Source: Saccostrea echinata (taxonomy: Eukaryota). Taken from it: DNA of 64,000 bases. The position numbers were made by a program, and so were the translations under genes. The notes beneath the pieces are model-generated. The model searched no databases. It was not told where the DNA came from and worked only from the letters and a program-made list of their open reading frames with translations. Positions 1 through 29,000 of the stretch are shown in pieces; position 1 is the first letter of the stretch; the number at the start of each line of letters is the position of its first letter. The stretch lies in the NCBI RefSeq assembly GCF_033153115.1, contig NW_026889759.1, forward strand, positions 10,602,001 through 10,666,000, written 5' to 3'.

Positions 1-170
1 TGCTTACACTGAATATTGCTGAAAATTGAAAATAAGCACAGGTATTCTGCAGCAATTCTGCAAACCAAATATCATCTTAAATATTAAGAAAGAATCATTA
101 TCAGTGTTAATCTAAATTACATGTATATCAATGTAATACTGTTCAAAGAGCAGTGTGCTGAATTTTGCAG

Positions 171-3100
171 TGAAAAAGCGCACTGGAACACCAGCTACCA
201 GAAAAAGTAAGAAAGCTCAATCTGCCACTGCTAAACGCCTGTCAGCCCAGCGCGCTGCCGAGAAAAAGGCAAAGGCTGCAAAAGAAGAGGAGGAAAAAGG
301 GACCACTGAGAAAGAGGAACAAGAGGAGGAAAGTCAGAATGATGATGAAAGTCCTGAGAAGGTGGTGAAGGATCCACCAAAACAGGAATCACCCAAAAAG
401 AAAATTATCACCAAGACAAAAGCCAAGGAGTCAGGCAAGACCAAATGTGAGTCACGTAACTTTTTCCTTCATTTACTTCAAAGATTAGCATATCATGTAT
501 GCAGCTCTATTAAGGCTGCCCAAAGTTTGAATGCATTTTAAACAAACCATTACTTGCAAACCCTATCGTACACAAGTAAAGTCAATTTAGTAGAGCATTC
601 TTTCAACTATTTAAGAACATGTTTGTTCTGATCATGTGACAGACAATTATAATTTTACCAATTGTTATACATAAATTCGCTTCAGCACAGGTTATTAAAA
701 TGATTTTTGTTACCAATTTATTGCTACAAATAAATGAAAATATAATTTTACAATGATTTTGCAGTGAAGTCTCCAAAAGTCAACAAATCCCCCAAAAAGA
801 AAATATCTACAGAAAATATCTCGCAAGATGAAGGTAAATTATGGGTTGTTTTTTTTTTATTTTTTAAAGATTTATCCGTAATGGTCCACATATTAAATTG
901 TGCACCTGCATGTTCATTAATTAACATAATTAAATTTTAATATGATATCTGTGTTGCAGAGAATGAGTCAACTGAAGGTGAGAAGACTCAGGAGGAGGGA
1001 GAAACAGAGACCCGCCCCATTCCAGAACCAATGGATGCTCAGGATTATGACACTCGCAGTGAAGCAGGCTCCAGTGATGGAAGTCTGAACAATGAGGAGT
1101 CTGGAGAATCAGGTTTATATTTCATTTTTGAATACAATTTCACTGTCAAGAAATCACTCCCAAGAAAGCAAGATGTGATTATTATTATTGGTTAGATCAT
1201 GGTTTAGTACGACATAAGTGATGAAAAATGATCAGGATAGTTAGGGGTCAAATGTTGTTTATTACAGATTTAGACTTAGAGGGAGAGGATTCGGTGCCAG
1301 AAAAAAAGAAACGCAAGACCAGAGACATATCTCCTATAGAATGGGATAGAAAGAGTGAAGGGAAAAGTGAAGGAGAGGAAGGAGAAGAAGAAGACGGTAA
1401 AAGTGATGATAACAAAAGTGAAAAATCCGAAGACTCTACTGCCAGGAGTGAGTGAACAAGATTTTGTCAGTGTCAAATTATATTGAATTTCAGATCAATA
1501 ATTATTCTAGCATTTTGTAATTTGAAAAAAAAAAATTTCCTTCATAACAGAAATAAGTTCAAGGATGAAGTACATCTATCGTGGAGCAAGATACTTCGTG
1601 ATTAAAAGTAACAACCATGAAAATGTGGCTCTGGCCAAAGCCAAAGGTGTTTGGTCCACACCTCCTCAGAATGAAATCCGATTAAACAATGCCTACAAGG
1701 TCAGTTACCATTGTATATATGTCATGTAATTAGTTACTATTGTATACACATACATGTATCTTGTAATATGAGTTATGGTTAGTTGATACCATTCCATGTT
1801 TGTGTATAAGTGAAAACATTTTTTTTTTCAGAGCTGTGATAATGTGATACTGATATTTTCTGTCAGAGAAAGTGGAAAGTTTCAAGGTAACATGTCATAT
1901 AAAGTGAACTATTAATTAAACTTAAGTACATGTATTTGCAACACTGTTTGAAATGTGACAATTACATGTTGGTGTACCCTGCTAGGTTTTGCCAGAATAG
2001 CTGACGAGTCCACCAAAGACCATCCTCCAATTCGATGGGTGCTGCCTCCTGGTTTGAGTGCAAGAGCTTTAAGTGGCGTTTTTAAACTTGACTGGATCAA
2101 CAGGTAAACCATAACAAAAAATTGAAAATTATCTCCAATTGAATAAAGGGCACTGATTTACAGAATACATGTTTATCTAGATTTAAAAGAAAACAATGTA
2201 ACAATTTTTACTCCTGGTTATCAGGAAGGAGCTTGCCTTTACAAAGACACAACATCTCCATAATGCATGGAATGACAACAAGCCAGTAAAAATTGGAAGA
2301 GATGGGCAGGTAAATTTGATATTTTATGACACACTTCTGTATAAGATGGTCTGTATAATTTGCCATATTTTACAGACGATTGGTCATTGCTGTTACTTGG
2401 TTAATGACTCGTCAAAACAAGAAGTCTTTTAAAAAATCCTTAAGCTGGGCAATTCGAAGTTCAAAATGGAGCAAGTTTCATGTTTATTACTCAGAACTAA
2501 TCAAGTTTCCTTTACAAGTCAAAAGACAGGAAAATCAATGTTATTACGTATTTGATTGTATATGGAAACTAACTATTGAAAATAACTAGGACTAATCGAG
2601 TACCAGTGACTTTGAGAAAAAAGTTTGGTATTAAGTATGATAACTAAAAAGGAAATTTAGATTATTTTAAATATTGCATACTTGCCTTGAATTGTAGGAA
2701 GTGGAACCAAGATGTGGAGAGGCTCTGTGTAAAATGTTTCCGCCCGATGAAAATGTGGATCTTTCATCCATTGCAAGAAAAGCTCGTAAATCATCCCGCA
2801 GTGGAGGAGGACCCCAAGCAATAACGGAGAGAAGAAATCGCGGGGGTTATCGGGGGCGTCCTGAATTCATTAGGTTAGAGACGTTTGGAAAATTGTGTAG
2901 TAAAACTAGTAGGACATTTTAATAGGTACCTAAGATTTAAAAAAAAAAAATTAAAAACTTGCGTTCGGTAAGTATGCAGAGGACAAATGACAGTTGATTT
3001 ATTTTGTTTGAAGATTTTTCAGGTTTAGAGGCCCAGTTTAAAAATCTGGAACAAAATGTGGACTATTTTGTAGCATGGCTATGTGCCTCAATAGCCAACT

Positions 3101-6100
3101 CTTAGTGGCTCTTAGCATGCTAAATGTGACTGCCACTTTAAAAAGTTCTAAAGGACTAACTCCCCATTTTGTGACCCCTCTCTATATCTGGACTAATCCA
3201 CCACAATACTAGCTACATGTATCTCAATGGACTCACCACTTTAGTTCTGTATGGACCAGAGAAATCGGCCATTGTGTTTAAATAAGAAAAAAAAATGTGA
3301 ATGAACATTCTTCTTTGGACTAAATATTTATTGCAGCCATGTGTTCTAAAATTTATGTGTGATATGAACTTTTTCTTTGGACTAAAAATATAATGCAGCC
3401 AGTTGTTGCTTAATATTGTGTGAATGAACTATTCCTATATGGACAATGTTGTAAACGATGTGTTAATGACTGCAGTGATAAGTATGTGAAGATGCTGGCC
3501 GAGCAATGTACGGTATGTTATCTAATCCATTTACTTACATCAAGTCCACCCAACTAAAGAAACCGAATCCAACATAAAAAAAATATCAGTTTGAGTTTTA
3601 TTCCAAAAATACTAATCTGAGTTTAGTAAATATTGTAGCGTGGATAATTTTTCTTAATTGAAGAGTTATGTGACAAATATATGAAAAACATAATGGATTT
3701 GTACATATATAGAAGATGTACTTTTGTAGCAGATTAATTTTTTAAATACATAATTTTAGTATTAAGTAAATGTGTGTCCTTGCTTTTAACAAACATTTCA
3801 GCAGAGCAAAAATTATAGAAGCTAACAGTAGATGCTATGTTTATATTAATTACATTGATTTTCAAATGTACAAAAGTTTCCCAAATAAACACAGTTTGTT
3901 ACATAGCACACTGCAGGGAACAGATATGAATGGTAAATCTTTATTTAAAAAAAAGTTGCATTAAAATGTCATACTTAGCATTTATTTCAATTTACTGATG
4001 GAAAAACAACAGTCTAGACTTTAGCTTTAATATATATTTTTCTAAAGTTGCATAGATATCATAAAATGTAAATCTGTATTCATTCATGTTTTTAATCTCT
4101 TTCTGAAACACAGAATTTTTGCAAAACATTCTTAATATAATCTGACAAGGAATTCACTTATATTCAAGTTTACAAGAAAGGTAAAGTTAAAAACTGTATA
4201 GAATTTAAGGGTTTCTGTGCATTATGAATGACCATGTTCAGATACAAATTCTGATTGGCAGTCGTGTGGGATGAAAGACGTTGGACTTGATGTAAGCAAC
4301 CATTGTAAATTCTTGTACAGCAAAATGTACCTTGTCTTATTGTGATCAAGCACTGAAACAAATATGGTTGTTGTAATGTTGAATATAGGCATAGACCATA
4401 CAGCAGGGAGGACTTCTATGAACAAGATAGAAGAAAGAGAAGTCGTGATGAGATGCAACATGGAAGAGGTAAACTTATTTTGTAAATATAGTTTAAGGCC
4501 AACAATAAAAAAAAATGATTTGTTTGATGTATTCCGACCAACCTTGAAATTCACCTCTACCCCCATCATTTTTTTTCAGTACTTTTATTTTTTCTTTCCA
4601 AAGAAAAACAAATTACATGTATCCACATCATTTTTAAGATTAAGGTTCATATTTCTCAAAGATGCTTTTTAGATTAAAAAGTTTTGACTCATATACATGT
4701 ACATTATTACAGTAATGAAAACATCAATAAATTTTAAGTCTTTGATTTTAATGACAATTATCAGTGTGTCAAAAATTCCAAACACAAAAAAATATAACAA
4801 TACCTACTTACCCACCATAAAAATGTTGAAGTACATCAAACAAAACCTTTTTTAATGATGGCCTTACACAAATAGAAAATTATTCAAACAACACTTTAAA
4901 TATGAGCTCTAGAGTTTCCATCAGATTTAACAAAACCATTTCCTACCCATGATGAAAAATAAAACAGATGTAAAAGGAAACAGGTTTCCATTCTTTTGTT
5001 TTGTAATGTAGTTTAACAATTGATAATTTTAGGTTTCTACAAAGAGAGAAGAATGGACAGGTAAGTTTTGTTTTGGTTTGGTTTTTGGGTTTTTTGTTTT
5101 TTTTTTGGCATTTAAAGAAATTTTCAATGTCAAGAGTCAATTCCATTAAAATGACATGCATTGTAGAGTCCTATAGGATCTTAAGGAGGCTGGGGGGTCA
5201 ATAAATTAACCATCAGATATAACTTAATTTTTTTAGATATGATATCTTAAGCAGTCAACTATCATTTGGCAAACAAAAATTTCATACATTTTAGTTTTAA
5301 AATTTGATCATTTTTGTATATCTTTATATGGAGCTCTTCTTCTATAGGAGATCAATATAGTCTGAAAATGGCCACAACCACCCAGCCCTCTTAATCTACT
5401 TGTACATTTTTGAAATTTTAACTTGTTTTAAACTTGTTTTAAATTTTTCTTCAGATCACCAAGATATGGAGTGAGGAGAGAAACATTTATCAATGGGGTA
5501 AGTATCTTACATTTTTATTGAGTAAAAGTTTATCATTGTCTAACTGTCTTTTACTTAAAATTTTTTATTCATGAATTTTAGTCATACAGTGATTACATCA
5601 GGGAATTCACTCACAGTCGAGCACCCCCACCCCCCATGCCACCATATGGACCACCGGTAAGTGATATGTATATATATCTGTAGATAAGTTTATTTATTAG
5701 TACAGTGTATTAAGCGTACAGTTTGTATTAAGTAACTACCTTACTCTGCATAATAGACGAAAAAGATTTTTAACAGTTTTATTTAGTAATGGATATTAAA
5801 CTTGTTCTAATTACAGCCACCAGGATTTGCCATGGACCCCATGAACCCTTACAGTGGTCACTATGACCAGAGACCAAGAGAATACATGATGGCATCCCAG
5901 GAATACAACATGGCCTCAATCTCCAGATCCAGAGCAGACAAAAGATCTGTAAGTTAACTAATTCCATGTGTATTTATTGCTAATATTTCAAGGCTGTAAT
6001 GACCATTTATTGCTCATCCATTTGGATGTACTTTGTCTGAAGATAGAATTGCTTTTAAAAGACTATTATTAATTTGTTGTTTATTGTAGTATGAGAGGGA

Positions 6101-6215
6101 TGTGGACGATTTCCTCAGAAGGACCACAGAGGGAAGTAGGCGTCGTCGACACAGCAGCGGGGATCGTGATCGCAGCCGAGAGAGGGACCATCATCGACAC
6201 AGAGACCGCAGATAA
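171..6215 (+). CDS. YTHDC1: YTH domain-containing protein 1 (nuclear m6A reader), 5' end outside window
   Basis: GT-AG exons 171-446, 765-833, 960-1112, 1268-1447, 1551-1699, 1832-1886, 1986-2103, 2225-2309, 2698-2873, 4389-4468, 5033-5060, 5455-5497, 5582-5656, 5817-5948, 6090-6215. E/K-rich N-terminus; YTH domain [25 protein letters not shown]...[19 protein letters not shown]...[28 protein letters not shown]; C-terminal [31 protein letters not shown] and an R/D-rich tail typical of YTHDC1. Confidence 0.96.
2912..3445 (+). promoter_or_regulatory. Intronic cluster of GGAC(T/A/C) DRACH motifs (candidate m6A regulatory element)
   Basis: GGACT at 3060, 3153, 3190, 3229, 3317, 3379; GGACA at 2912, 2981, 3441; GGACC at 3253. 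No GTCC (antisense copy) seen in the same interval. Confidence 0.6.
5185..5390. mobile_element. Small TTAA-flanked MITE (Kolobok-like)
   Basis: TTAA at 5181-5184 and 5391-5394; imperfect TIRs GGAGGCTGGG / CCCAGCCCTC; lies in a YTHDC1 intron. Confidence 0.6.
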
Positions 6216-6917
6216 CATCATCACTCGTATCAACTTCATTATTTGTGCAATGTACATCATTTAACATTGATTTTATAGTCATTTATATGTCAGATACTTG
6301 TTTTTTTAATACAAGAACACACAATAGATATGTGGAACACATTTGAAGTTGCCTATTTGCATTGAGCAAGTCTCTTTTTTTTTTTTAATTGTGAAGTGCC
6401 ATACACTGAATTACAGAAATTTGTCAAAGTCCCTGATAGAAGTAAAATATGAAGAGGTTCATAACCACTGCTTAAGTTGTTCAGTATTACCGAGTGTTTC
6501 ATTAAGTACATATAAATCTGTAAAATGTTTTGAGGAGTATTGTACTCATTAGTACATACATATACAATGTAAATATAGAGCTTTCTTTATGCAACTTTAT
6601 GCATACTTAAAAATCATACAAATTTACAAAATAAGGCGTATTTACATTTTTGTATTGTTGTCTTTTCTGTACAGAATGATTGGTTTCATATTCATCATCA
6701 TTTTGATTCATTTTTTACACATTAATTTGCTGTCATGTTCACTGTTTAAGCCTGTGGTTTGATGTTGGCAATATCTGTGGAATCATTTGGGGCAAAGAGA
6801 GTATTTTGAGTAAGAATTTGGTTGTGTGTATTTGTGTGACATCTATTTCACTGAGAGAGTTGATAACAATGTGAGGGTAAGGCGTACTTCATCTGCATTA
6901 TACATTAGATAAACTGT

Positions 6918-6923
6918 AATAAA
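6918..6923 (+). promoter_or_regulatory. Probable polyadenylation signal of YTHDC1
   Basis: AATAAA about 700 nt after the stop, a second one near 6954, followed by T/GT-rich sequence. Confidence 0.4.
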
Positions 6924-8424
6924 GAATGTAAATCTATCTGAATTTATTTGTGAAATAAATAAATTAACTCTTTTTCTGTTTCTGTTATTCATTTAAAGGT
7001 AGAATACTGTGGAATCATTTTAATTTGTGGGAGTCAGTGTTTGTGGGCAATCAAAATCTTGCTGATTTGTTGTAATATATGTTTCATTAGTTAATTATCA
7101 AATTGTAAATACATGAAGATGTTGCCTTAAACATGGAGTTCTGCTATCTCCTTCTGTTCCATAATTTGCAAGACGACCAAGTGTAAACAATGTAAGGAGA
7201 ATTGGAAATATTTCATTATGGATATACATGGACATCATTTGCCAGTTGTACTTCTGTATGGCCTTCATTGCTAAGCATTGGTCTCATTCAAGGAAGTAGT
7301 AGCTGTCCATATGGTACAAAATATTAACTCAATAGCAATTGTCAAGATTAGGGCAAATTACAAACCAGTAAAACATTTCTTTTCTTCAACAATTTATTGT
7401 TTTGCATATTTTTTAATTATATACAAGGTGCTAGCCAAGATGTCATGGATTACCAGGGTATTTCAAAAGAGGTTTCATTGACTATTGTTATGTAAATATA
7501 TATATGTAACACAGTCAAAATCTAACTTCTCAATTTGAACACAATATCATGACTGTTCTTTAGTGCAAGCTAAAGTTATACAAAATATTTAGTTAAACAC
7601 GGGAAAAGGCTAGCTCAGAAAATGCAAAAACATTTATCCTCTAAATTGATAATATTGCATCACAGCACAGAGTATAAGCTTTTAAGTAGCACCATGAGAC
7701 TATTTCTTGAAGTCGGAAATGCCGGAGTGGGAGAAGTAAATGCTACACTAATTTAACTAAAAATATAATGCCTCATATCCTTCTTGGTACAAAGAAACGA
7801 ATAACAAATATATACAAAATACATCTCATGTAAAATTAAAAAGACATATTAATGATTATCAAAAAATAATACTATGATACAATTAACTGATTTTAAAATA
7901 TTAACACAATTACAAAAATTCAATTTAATAATGCATGTAATTCAATTGAATATACATTCAAAACTCATCATCTCAAACTCAATAGGGCTGAGGAAAAAAT
8001 TGAGATATCTGAGGATTCAAGATATCCAAGGGAAAATACTTACAGAATAAGTGTTTGGGACTTACAAATCACTTCAACATATCCATTGTATTCAAGATGT
8101 CAGTGTTCAAGATACTGATGTTCAACTGAATTTTCATTTACATGTACATATGAAATGCAACATAATGCTGTTTACAAATAAAATGATTTTAATCACAAGC
8201 ATAAACAAGTTCCCATAATCACTTAAATACCTTGGGAGTACAGAAAATGAGGTTGATTTCTTTTATAAATAATGAAAGATTGTGACATGGTGTACATTTC
8301 AAACAATGAAATACACATGGAGTGATATATCAACCTTGGTAACAAGCATAACTTCAGTGCATGCTGTTAATTAAAGAAATTTATAAGAAGCACATGATTC
8401 TGTCACACCTATGAAAATTTTGAA

Positions 8425-26038: not shown

Positions 26039-29000
26039 TCAGCCATTCTTACATTTGTTTTGGTCCGTCTTTAGATACTGATCGAACTCAGTACTGTCAA
26101 TCTCGGACACGTCCCTTAGCTCTTGAGATGATAATACGTAGTCGTTTAGCTGAGGAGGCTGGGTTTTTGGCTCGGTTTCCTGAACCCCCGACAACACAGT
26201 TCCAGCTTCTGACCAGTAGGTCAAACATTGTTCGTCTGAGTACATGCGAACTTCTGCCTGAGCGTCTTGAGACCCCATAGGGAAGACAAAGCCTTGAAAA
26301 TTGTTCTGATAGGGCGGAGTGTCCGGAAACCCAAGACAAATCGTGGATGGTTGTATGCTTGTGTGGTCAAATCCGGACCCCACTTGCTCTGCAGCATAGT
26401 TGATTTGAGAAATCAAAAAGGGCGGTGCGTCTCTTTGTGACACTTCAGGACTTGCAGGTGGCGTTAAGTTGGTAGATTTTGACACACATTCAATTTCCAC
26501 TTGTTTGCTTACATGTATATTAGACAAAGACAGATCGTCTAGAGAACCCCTGAACTTGGTCTTTTTCCGGCGCGGACGATACTTGTAGTTTGGATATTTT
26601 TTCATGTGTAGCTCCCGTAATTTGTCAGCTTGTTCGTTGTAGTATTTCTTTTGTGATGGACTTAGAGATCGCCATTTCTGACCTACAAAGTAAACCAACC
26701 TATATATGTTTATGTTAGTAATCTGAATTGTAATAATATTATGAGGTTTGTTACGTTATGAAAGTATTTACCTAAGTTACGCAATTAACACAGAAATGTG
26801 CAAGATGAAAAATATAGCTGTGTTTCACATTAAGCAAAACATACAAACATTTATAGTTGCTTTAACAGAAAGAAAAAAAGACGTAAGAAATATTGCATTT
26901 GACTAGGTGGATTAAGGATTTTTCACTTATAAGCAGTAGTGCGCCGATTAATCGATTGAATCGATTTCCTAGTCGAAATGACACCGATTATAGACAATCG
27001 ATTATAATTTTGATAACCGATTAATCAACATAATAGTTAAAAGCAAATTATTCCTGTGATTTCTATGATTCAAGGTTCTTTGCATGCAAGCACATAGCAA
27101 CGAGTTTAAAAAGGGGGGGGTGCAACCTCCCCAAAAAATATGACAAGCCCCCCCCCCCCAAAAAAAAAACAACAGCAACAACAATCAGTTCAAAAATGAA
27201 AAAATGGGAGGGGGGACTCCCATTAATCTGACAAGCAAAAAAAATAACAAATAAATAAATAAAAAAAAAAATAAATGTCCAAACTCGAGAATCCTATTTC
27301 GTGGGAGGGGGTCCTTACTTTTGGATACTTTTTTGCAAAGTTGCCCCCTCCCCCCTGTTTAAACATCATGTCGACAAACATTGTAAATTAAGTGATACTT
27401 CAGATTTAAACCCATTCACTTACAGATGTAAATTTTACATGTATACAAATTTTACTCTTGGTCTGTAAACGTAATTTTTCAACTCTTGTGTAAATGTAAT
27501 TTTTCACAGACACTCTCAAACTGTATGTATATCAGTACGAAGTTTGCAATTTCAAAGCTTTCTAATCGCTCTTCACCGCAGTGTTTCTCCCATGCACAAA
27601 ATAGAATGTTGCCATTTCTTGTTTAAATGCAACTTAAAATAATTATTGGACTTTTAAATAATACAACAGATGGTCACTGTTCTCTCTTATGTAAAAAGAG
27701 GCATTTTTTAATGAAATCGATGATGCTCTATTTTCTAGACAATTTCAATATTACTATCCTCGTGAAAATTTTGCTACGCGTTTGCATGACTGAAAATTAA
27801 TACACCAGGAGTTAATTTACTCATATGTAAAAGTTAATTTGCACCTAGATGTAAATTAGATTGCACCTAGATTATGGGGACAGTGCAGAATAAACACCTG
27901 TGTCATCACCTATGGAAACTTATCAATGTCTGATTTCTCAGGCATGTTTCATGGTTTCCTTTATTTCATCATGTCTACTGAGAAATTCCTATAAACGATT
28001 TTAGTCATCGTATCTATAAATAGAGTTTTAACTGGTTAATCCGTAGGAACGTCTTGCAGTTAACCGATTAGCAATTAATTNNNNNNNNNNNNNNNNNNNN
28101 NNNNNNNNNNNNNNNNNNNNNNNNNNNNNNNNNNNNNNNNNNNNNNNNNNNNNNNNNNNNNNNNNNNNNNNNNNNNNNNNNNNNNNNNNNNNNNNNNNNN
28201 NNNNNNNNNNNNNTTGATGCTACACGTAACTAAACTTTTTATTATATATCAGCATATTACCATATATGAGGCAAATTAAAATAATGACGCAAATTTTAAC
28301 CACCTCACACAAAAAACACAAAAACACCATGTAAATATCTAAAGCCTCTGAACATATTATATATATAACAGGATTCACTCAGAGGGAAAAAAAAATCAAA
28401 AATTTCAATGTTTAGAAAGAACGCCACAACGACAAAGTGTATTGCAATGTATTGCCATTATAAATATTGTTGCAGGTAGATCTTTACTGATTAAAATTTA
28501 TTACATCTACTCGTAACTATGTTCATAAAAGCTCTTTTTCTATGATGTAATCATGTATACTTTTACTATCGTGAAGAAAACATTTTATTGCTTTAATTTT
28601 AATTAGTAACTAATTTGTAATTTTCAGTGTATTTCTGAATAATACAACAAATTCAATCTAAGAGGAAAGACGTAGATATTATAAAAAAGTATTGAACATT
28701 AAGAAAAAATAGATTTGAAACCGGTCTACATGGAGATGTCTACTTGACACATACATGTATATTGCTGTACCGCATCAAAAACAAAAATAAAAGATAACAG
28801 AATTTACTACAAACTCAGAGAAGAATTTAAACTCTGCCTCCCAATTAGAAAATGATCAGACATCTGAAATAGTCTGTTTTTCAATGATTACCTTTCTTCC
28901 TGTATGATTTAGAACTCATGCAGCCACTTACCCAGCATTTTACTGAGATCAGCATTGTGAACTTCGGGGTTTTCCGCAGCCAATTTCTTCCTCTCCGTTT

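Follow-up and report, generated by a model that had tools for sequence, protein, structure and literature searches.

The DNA analyzed here is a 64,000-nt stretch of the Saccostrea echinata genome (contig NW_026889759.1, positions 10,602,001 to 10,666,000; hereafter the window). It carries the oyster orthologue of YTHDC1, a reader of N6-methyladenosine (m6A), and inside one intron of this gene, at 2912-3445, lies a cluster of sense GGAC motifs that are candidate sites for methylation by METTL3/14 and for binding by YTHDC1. Positions are those of the window, its features are on the + strand, and offsets such as +39 count from the first nucleotide of the intron. The host gene was identified by exon searches that led to full-length YTHDC1 proteins. 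Exons E to H of the window were identical to the NCBI protein 'YTH domain-containing protein 1-like [Saccostrea echinata]' (P0098; Pfam PF04146), after which the nearest proteins were from Crassostrea and Ostrea. The last YTH-domain exon (EVEPRCG...RGRPEFI; 2698-2873), located by tblastn with the C. gigas protein P0002 and by its identity to P0098, is single copy in the genome, ends in phase 2 within an Arg codon and is the counterpart of mouse exon 11. The intron that carries the cluster (2874-4388, 1515 nt, acceptor AG at 4387-4388) has the position of mouse Ythdc1 intron 11. It is followed by the next coding exon (4389-4468; tblastn and match to P0098), and the exon junction in P0098 is PEFIR|HRPYSRE. 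Small exons at ~5032-5061 and ~5453-5497 come next, then exons near 5583, 5817 and 6090, all of them located with the C. gigas protein by tblastn; had the three small exons been overlooked, the intron would seem longer than it is. The initial annotation had named the gene as YTHDC1 and placed the cluster in the intron after the EVEPRCG exon, and both assignments were borne out by the identity to P0098 and by tblastn.

Ten GGAC motifs were counted on the + strand (at 2912, 2981, 3060, 3153, 3190, 3229, 3253, 3317, 3379 and 3441) and none on the opposite strand of 2912-3445. Six of the ten were GGACT (3060, 3153, 3190, 3229, 3317 and 3379), and those at 3153 and 3190 read GGACTAAY. These numbers confirmed the counts first reported from the sequence (ten sense GGAC, six GGACT, none antisense), and the expectation of well under one GGACT at one-third GC held as well: the GC content of the 534 nt was 0.34, and base composition alone predicted 0.89 GGAC and 0.30 GGACT. 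When the intron was simulated 20,000 times with a first-order Markov model, the mean was 0.72 GGAC and the maximum 7, and with a model built from the first 600 nt only, ten GGAC were reached in 0 of 5,000 simulations. The count was also the highest among all 534-nt windows, on either strand, of the 64-kb window, where the + strand had a mean of 1.19 GGAC per 534 nt and the - strand a maximum of 5. In the first 600 nt of the oyster intron, GGAC ranked first among the 256 4-mers, and the sites, which span +39 to +568, filled the first third of the intron. Sense DRACH motifs numbered 19 in 2912-3445 compared to a window mean of 11; ten of them were the GGAC sites, and the non-GGAC DRACH sites in this segment showed no enrichment over the window background.

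Repeats make up part of the cluster. A 62-nt tandem repeat of ~2.2-2.5 copies occupies 3296-3445 (Tandem Repeats Finder: 3296-3430, period 62, 81% matches). Each copy contains one GAAC and one GGAC, and the sites at 3317, 3379 and 3441 come from this repeat, with a partial third copy that extends to ~3445. A repeat search further found two degenerate copies of GGACTAAYYCMCCA, 37 nt apart, at 3153-3203 and a looser third at 3229, which means that the GGAC sites at 3153, 3190 and, loosely, 3229 are degenerate copies spaced by 37-39 nt. Because the sites were partly duplicated in these two ways, the ten GGAC go back to ~5-6 independent origins. When 2880-3520 was compared to the whole 923-Mb genome it matched its own locus only, and a transposable element or satellite was ruled out because the region is single copy. 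A search of Rfam gave no matches at gathering score in 1-7000, and a 45-amino-acid open reading frame inside the cluster (3075-3209) had no relatives in the search made for them.

As a genome background we sampled 200 kb from other contigs of the same genome, and this sample held one other cluster of 10 GGAC per 534 nt (locus L013) and one of 8 (L005). The L013 cluster was a degenerate minisatellite of GGACTAACCCTAAT-like units. It lies at L013:4474-5010 on the - strand (G000:C13, near 5.0 Mb), with units like GCAAGGACTAACCCTAAT and ten GGAC on one strand, and its unit looks similar to the GGACTAAYYC units at 3153-3203 of the window. GGAC clusters of such density are uncommon, not unique, in this genome. 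Since similar clusters exist elsewhere, density alone is not special, and what carries the argument is where the cluster lies and that it recurs at this intron position in other animals.

The cluster lies beside a weak splice site. The productive upstream 5′ splice site, TAG|GTTAGA (2871-2879), was placed by sequence and by the exon junction in P0098, and it has T at +3, A at +6 and a poor fit to the consensus. Upon read-through the first in-frame stop is a TAA at 2920-2922 (+47; open reading frame 2701-2922), 16 codons into the intron. A consensus downstream 5′ splice site, TCG|GTAAGTAT (2965-2975, with GT at 2968-2969, +95), is a perfect match to U1, and no other GTRAGT occurs within the intron's first 900 nt. 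Use of this donor, G|GTAAGTAT, is predicted from the sequence to add 94 nt and thereby cause a frameshift and a premature stop. One GGAC (+39) lies between the two donors, another 13 nt past the second donor, and eight more follow up to +568. Two donor-like sites, TAA|GTATGT (GT at 3482-3483) and ACG|GTATGT (GT at 3513-3514), were read from the sequence only, at 3479-3519; speculatively, use of either would place the whole cluster in an extended exon.

Conservation of the intron among oysters was judged through read-through peptides, which served as a proxy for DNA. By tblastn, the tails of P0099 (C. gigas) and P0001 (Ostrea edulis-like) aligned to 2863-3087 of the window; Saccostrea, Crassostrea and Ostrea can thus be aligned across the first ~215 nt of the intron (2874-3087). 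The conserved blocks include the +95 donor, whose GTAAGTATG is translated as 'VSM' in read-through fragments of both C. gigas and O. edulis. They also include the GGAC at 2981 and 3060; by sequence, the GGAC at 2912 is probably conserved among oysters too. In the C. gigas proteins P0099/P0159 (544 amino acids), every upstream exon is spliced and the frame then runs for no fewer than 68 codons into the intron. Some twenty Logan contigs of transcript length (2.9-3.8 kb) are the source of these proteins and of their relatives P0164-P0167 (544-546 amino acids). At the other end of the intron, C. gigas P0080/P0082 (182 amino acids; 17 contigs) retain its 3′ end with the downstream exons correctly spliced. 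The UniRef entry A0A8W8JNQ0 (548 amino acids) groups by clustering, at 90% identity, with the read-through proteins. Long proteins that end in the same read-through also occur in Tegillarca, Sinanodonta, Nucella and Acanthaster (isoform X4), and a gastropod-like species has Logan transcripts with this end as well.

To reach this intron in other animals, metagenome contigs were scanned with an alignment of the last YTH exon, which gave 80 loci of host DNA that were labelled by their closest named protein. L023 was Mya-like (bivalve, 95%), L024 Tegillarca-like (mollusc, 84%), L026 Capitella-like (annelid, 74%) and L059 Amphiura-like (brittle star, 79%), and the best named match of a group marked by 'RSDVTLY' was a bdelloid rotifer. 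Two further groups, A (L031-44, 49, 53 and 63) and C (L088-97), are taxonomically unplaced; they may be gutless oligochaetes and corals. Loci of cDNA type (L025, 29, 51, 52, 61, 75, 80, 84, 86, 98 and 100-102) were omitted, as were L030, which held no intron DNA, L045-48 and the termite-gut loci L066-73, in which the GT donor could not be placed, and L072. Also omitted, as a second YTH paralogue, were L060, 74, 76-79, 82, 83, 85, 87, 92, 94, 96 and 99. This second YTH gene (IEPVVGEALCRLFPVD...RGLNPH...) is also present in the group A metagenomes, has another exon end (the L060-L099 set of loci) and looks, by sequence, like a YTHDC1 paralogue.

GGAC was counted in the first 600 nt of each intron, a length that had been set from the oyster cluster without tuning on other loci. 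Sense and antisense counts were 10/0 in the oyster window, 8/0 in L023, 6/2 in L024, 6/2 in L026 and 5/1 in L059. They ranged over 8-17 and 0-4 in eight representative loci of group A and over 4-5 and 0-1 in three of group C, and the rotifer-like introns had 0-1 sense and 0 antisense. Relative to the first-order Markov expectation, the top rank among the 256 4-mers that GGAC holds in oyster was shared by L023, L024, six of the eight representatives from group A and one locus from group C, and in no lineage apart from the rotifer-like ones did GGAC fall below seventh place. In the pool of sixteen representatives other than rotifers, GGAC was observed 149 times with 33.1 expected (z = 20), and its reverse complement GTCC 16 times with 20.2 expected. 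With one representative per group, there were 55 sense and 7 antisense GGAC (p = 2e-10), 30 of the 55 sense motifs were followed by T, and a strand skew of AGAC, GAAC, AAAC, TGAC or TAAC was looked for and not seen. In simulations per lineage, the observed count was reached in 0 of 5,000 in oyster and L031, and the p-value rose up to 0.03 in L059. The excess was local, in that the upstream intron and the 600-1800 nt downstream were near background in most lineages. The exceptions were L024 and L026, in which the cluster runs on to ~1.2-1.8 kb, and L023, in which the 600 nt before the exon contained 9 sense and 0 antisense GGAC, which gives the exon a cluster on either side.

The initial annotation had proposed to look for a cluster in the same intron of other animals, and sense GGAC was found to be enriched there in molluscs, in annelid-like and echinoderm-like loci and in the two unplaced lineages. 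Its further proposal, that the element was kept by motif density rather than by alignable sequence, held in part. The motif excess does recur, but some sequence is kept as well, namely the donor TAG|GTYAG, a GGACT at ~+20 and, among oysters, the ~215 alignable nt. The GGACT ~20 nt into the intron is common to L023, L026, L059 and group A, and it accounts for a recurrent 'GL' in read-through peptides, fish included. A donor TAG|GT[TC]AG was present in every genomic locus where the donor could be placed (molluscs, annelid-like, echinoderm-like, rotifer-like and group C), the fish donor was likewise non-consensus as judged by peptide read-through, and the 'RL' read-through was kept in at least 90% of the fragments in alignment A1. 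These sequences suggest that selection acts on the weak donor as such, because it is kept even where the GGAC cluster is absent. A sense-only GGTAAGT was found within the first 400 nt of the intron in five spiralian lineages: at +95 in oyster, +122 in L023, +273 in L024, +373 in L026 and +101 in L031.

Two other features of this intron were seen in single lineages. The rotifer-like sequences (L054, L058, L062, L064, L065, L071, P0050, P0056, P0067 and P0069) have a common intron start of ~100 nt whose read-through is ...RSDVTLYLIIIRLTNLAIIFSTN.IQYRTFK.GVG; it lacks any GGAC and is a different conserved element in the same place. In group A (L031, L033, L037, L041, L042, L044, L049, L053 and L063), the first ~450 nt of the intron form an open read-through frame, and blocks of its peptide, such as ...IPQRTFLPSWT, are kept between loci; judged by sequence, this read-through may be a translated alternative C-terminus of YTHDC1. 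The motif ACTAAY occurs 2 times in the oyster cluster region compared to 0.28 per 534 nt in the window, and it was not seen in the same intron of L023, L026, L059 and L031. A STAR/QKI/SF1 response element (ACUAAY) was rejected as neither conserved nor significant, and for the same two reasons, the lack of conservation in other lineages and the lack of significance, the meaning first attached to the overlap of GGACTAAY with a STAR/SF1-type ACUAAY did not survive.

In mouse Ythdc1, both exon 11 and intron 11 are heavily marked with m6A in the vicinity of the 5′ splice site, and a minor junction that uses a downstream donor makes up 20-30% in the wild type and ~0 without METTL3 (Wei et al. 2021, PMC8327914). 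The alternative parts were termed 'poisonous', acute loss of METTL3 led to more Ythdc1 RNA and protein, and Ythdc1 knock-out phenocopied METTL3-dependent alternative 5′ splice-site changes across the transcriptome (PMC8327914). Retention of Ythdc1 intron 11 was lowered by Mettl3 knock-out, as validated by reverse transcription-PCR in the miCLIP2 paper (bioRxiv 10.1101/2020.12.20.423675). The mammalian m6A splicing feedback, which the initial annotation had put forward, is thus real (PMC8327914; bioRxiv 10.1101/2020.12.20.423675).

The mouse primers that flank intron 11 (bioRxiv 10.1101/2020.12.20.423675) translate to PSRREP in exon 11 and PEFHQRP in exon 12. They put the intron after ...REPVRDVGR, and the end of mouse exon 11 is ...PSRREPVRDVGR. 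Two cyprinid fragments, P0070 and P0091 (one cluster member is from Cirrhinus mrigala), read EIEP[ED]CGTQLC...REPVPRDVGR and then LEMFFGL, and the oyster counterpart of this fish read-through is ...RGRPEFIR and then LETFGKL. Since the primer translations and the fish fragments match the oyster, the intron is the same and is split in the same Arg codon. In position, in phase and in its first ~25 nt, the oyster intron corresponds to that of mouse and fish. The suggested match to the mammalian intron after the EIELECG exon is in keeping with this, as both the primers and the cyprinid fragments give the same position.

The writer of the mark is present in oysters. Matches to MT-A70 (PF05063) above the cut-off were found on three contigs of the genome, with two separate places on C10. 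One MT-A70 gene (METTL3/14 family), at G000:C10:11422673-11423228, shares contig C10 with YTHDC1 and follows it ~0.8 Mb downstream, which is probably a coincidence. Xu et al. are said to have shown in 2014 that the YTH domain of YTHDC1 prefers GG(m6A)C. Oysters have been described as having a functional m6A pathway, with DRA*C as its motif (PMC10787124), and the C. gigas literature agrees on a METTL3/14 writer (PMC10787124, PMC13629450). The text of the oyster paper that used sequencing after immunoprecipitation of methylated RNA (MeRIP-seq) does not discuss the YTHDC1 locus (PMC10787124).

From this analysis we put the probability at roughly two in three that the oyster cluster corresponds to the autoregulatory, m6A-dependent element known from intron 11 of mouse Ythdc1. 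In such a loop, METTL3/14 would methylate the GGAC(U) sites, which begin 39 nt past the weak donor TAG|GTTAGA, while the pre-mRNA is being made. YTHDC1, the gene's own product, with its preference for GG(m6A)C, would bind the methylated sites, and this binding would disfavour the weak donor. The transcript would then either use the consensus donor 94 nt downstream, with a frameshift and premature stop, or keep the intron, with a stop after 16 codons. Neither form would yield full-length reader, and degradation or nuclear holding would be expected for both. Since the unproductive forms would make no reader, high methylation or a high level of reader would lower reader output. That the oyster sites are methylated and bound by YTHDC1, which way splicing shifts and what becomes of the unproductive RNA are all inferences.

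Other explanations of the cluster have to be weighed. The intron could be conserved for regulated unproductive splicing while its GGAC motifs are read unmodified by another RNA-binding protein, for example a heterogeneous nuclear ribonucleoprotein (hnRNP) A1/A2B1-type protein on UAGG/GGAC or a serine/arginine-rich (SR) protein, with no role for m6A or YTHDC1 in invertebrates. The UAGG at the donor resembles hnRNP A1 sites, and TAG|GTYAG is kept even in the rotifer-like copies that have no GGAC cluster, so the splice-site pair alone could carry the regulation. However, only GGAC was skewed, with T next, and not AGAC, GAAC or other cores, and GGAC followed by T is the optimal METTL3/14 substrate and a preferred ligand of YTHDC1. 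The gene is moreover that of the reader itself, and the matching mouse region is methylated and responds to METTL3 loss. Reading of unmodified GGAC thus suits the motif specificity and the mouse data less well than m6A-dependent autoregulation does, and we consider it unlikely. We hold it to be quite unlikely that the sites are methylated without any reader feedback, either as a nuclear-decay mark on retained-intron RNA or for the tuning of a functional truncated isoform. Such an isoform would fit the read-through frame of group A, which is open for 107-155 codons in 9/9 loci while the other frames have 1-11 stops, and a translated short isoform in some lineages is hinted at by the several annotated proteins that end in read-through. 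In contrast, the frame shuts after 16 codons in Saccostrea echinata and after 68 in C. gigas, and the GGAC motifs of group A fall in all three phases. Feedback is also what the mouse points to, where YTHDC1 protein rises on m6A loss and Ythdc1 knock-out phenocopies the METTL3-dependent changes (PMC8327914).

The cluster might, at the other extreme, lack any function: tandem duplication within an unremarkable intron would have produced it, and the fame of GGAC would have drawn attention to it. Local duplication, through the 62-nt tandem and the 37-nt degenerate repeats, made about half of the ten GGAC sites, and the 200-kb background held two further clusters of 8-10, one of them a minisatellite; clusters as dense as the one in YTHDC1 thus occur elsewhere in the genome (L013, L005) with no tie to m6A genes. 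Yet the region is single copy, and a same-strand excess lies by the same donor in six or more further lineages, although their introns have otherwise no sequence relationship, with GGAC first of 256 4-mers in most lineages and 55 sense motifs to 7 antisense. After the cross-lineage result a functionless origin is strongly disfavoured, and we regard it as very improbable. The duplication and the background clusters nevertheless weigh against m6A-dependent autoregulation as well, and several other points do the same. The read-through contigs could partly be unspliced nuclear RNA in the libraries, groups A and C have no taxon assignment, and the GGAC enrichments in the echinoderm-like and Capitella-like loci are modest (p = 0.02-0.03). 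As read from the sequences, oysters have GGAAA where several phyla share the GGACT at ~+20. Finally, 9/10 GGAC lie past the +95 donor, whereas the aggregate m6A in mouse lies between the donors, and the oyster element may therefore act through retention or a farther donor and not through the +95 site.

A broader proposal, which we hold only tentatively and at somewhat less than even odds, is that an m6A homeostat composed of the weak TAG|GTYAG donor behind the last YTH exon, a downstream consensus donor or retention, and a sense-strand GGAC(U) cluster lying between and past them predates the protostome-deuterostome split, and possibly Bilateria if group C is cnidarian. It would then have been kept for >550 million years mostly by motif turnover, less by identity of sequence, and lost in bdelloid-like rotifers.

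Mouse Ythdc1 exon 11/intron 11 is the closest known system. It resembles the oyster case in the gene, the intron and a GGAC(U)-rich start after the 5′ splice site, and probably also in a competing downstream donor and non-productive retention, as suggested by the oyster sequence and the C. gigas read-through contigs. Methylation and the response to METTL3 were measured in mouse, whereas the oyster element is a candidate predicted from sequence. Past the donor and the first ~25 nt, the oyster intron cannot be aligned to vertebrates, and unlike in mouse most of its sites lie downstream of the nearest alternative donor and part of them come from recent tandem duplication. The poison exons of SR proteins, RBM39 and SMNDC1 are alike in that a conserved premature-stop splice choice lies in the gene of an RNA-binding protein with the protein's own motif clustered at the site. 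In the oyster, in contrast, the signal would be a modified base, which would let the loop report on the activity of the writer as well; the element takes the form of an extended exon or an intron that is kept, not of a cassette exon, and its conservation resides in architecture and motif density more than in sequence. In Drosophila, the nuclear YTH protein Ythdc1 (YT521-B) recognises intronic m6A sites of Sxl that lie close to a regulated splice site, and thereby alters splicing (PMC8327914). The Sxl case differs from that of the oyster in having another target gene and no feedback on the reader. With the MAT2A hairpins and METTL16, and with m6A at the 3′ splice site of C. elegans sams, methylation on the pre-mRNA of a pathway gene sets its productive splicing in S-adenosylmethionine (SAM) sensing. 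The likeness to the oyster is a mark on a pre-mRNA of its own pathway that gives homeostasis, and the differences are the METTL16/METT-10 writer, the motif UACAGAGAA, the dependence on RNA structure and the lack of a GGAC cluster.

In the literature library that was searched, no paper takes m6A-dependent self-regulation of YTHDC1, described to date in mouse cells only, beyond mammals, and none notes the conserved donor. The kind of element is already known in mouse, and its occurrence in invertebrates, as suggested by the sequences, is probably new. If m6A is confirmed in the mollusc, annelid-like and echinoderm-like introns, the coupling of m6A to splicing would be ancestral and not a vertebrate or fly speciality. 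An ancient module, if real, would rank with the oldest epitranscriptomic feedback circuits known and would offer a natural readout of m6A activity in the nucleus of non-model animals. The oyster element also gives m6A biology in lophotrochozoans, where function is still largely inferred from MeRIP profiles, a concrete target. The observed/expected ratio of GGAC in the YTHDC1 intron could further serve as a simple comparative marker against the presence or loss of the writer complex across animals.

Within 6.4 kb around two Wtap-domain exons of the oyster WTAP gene no GGAC cluster was found, and the intron that is relevant in mouse may fall outside this segment. In the window itself there is a run of 133 N at 28081-28213. 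The next coding exon of YTHDC1 (4389-4468) has a GGACT of its own at 4410, 22 nt past the acceptor.

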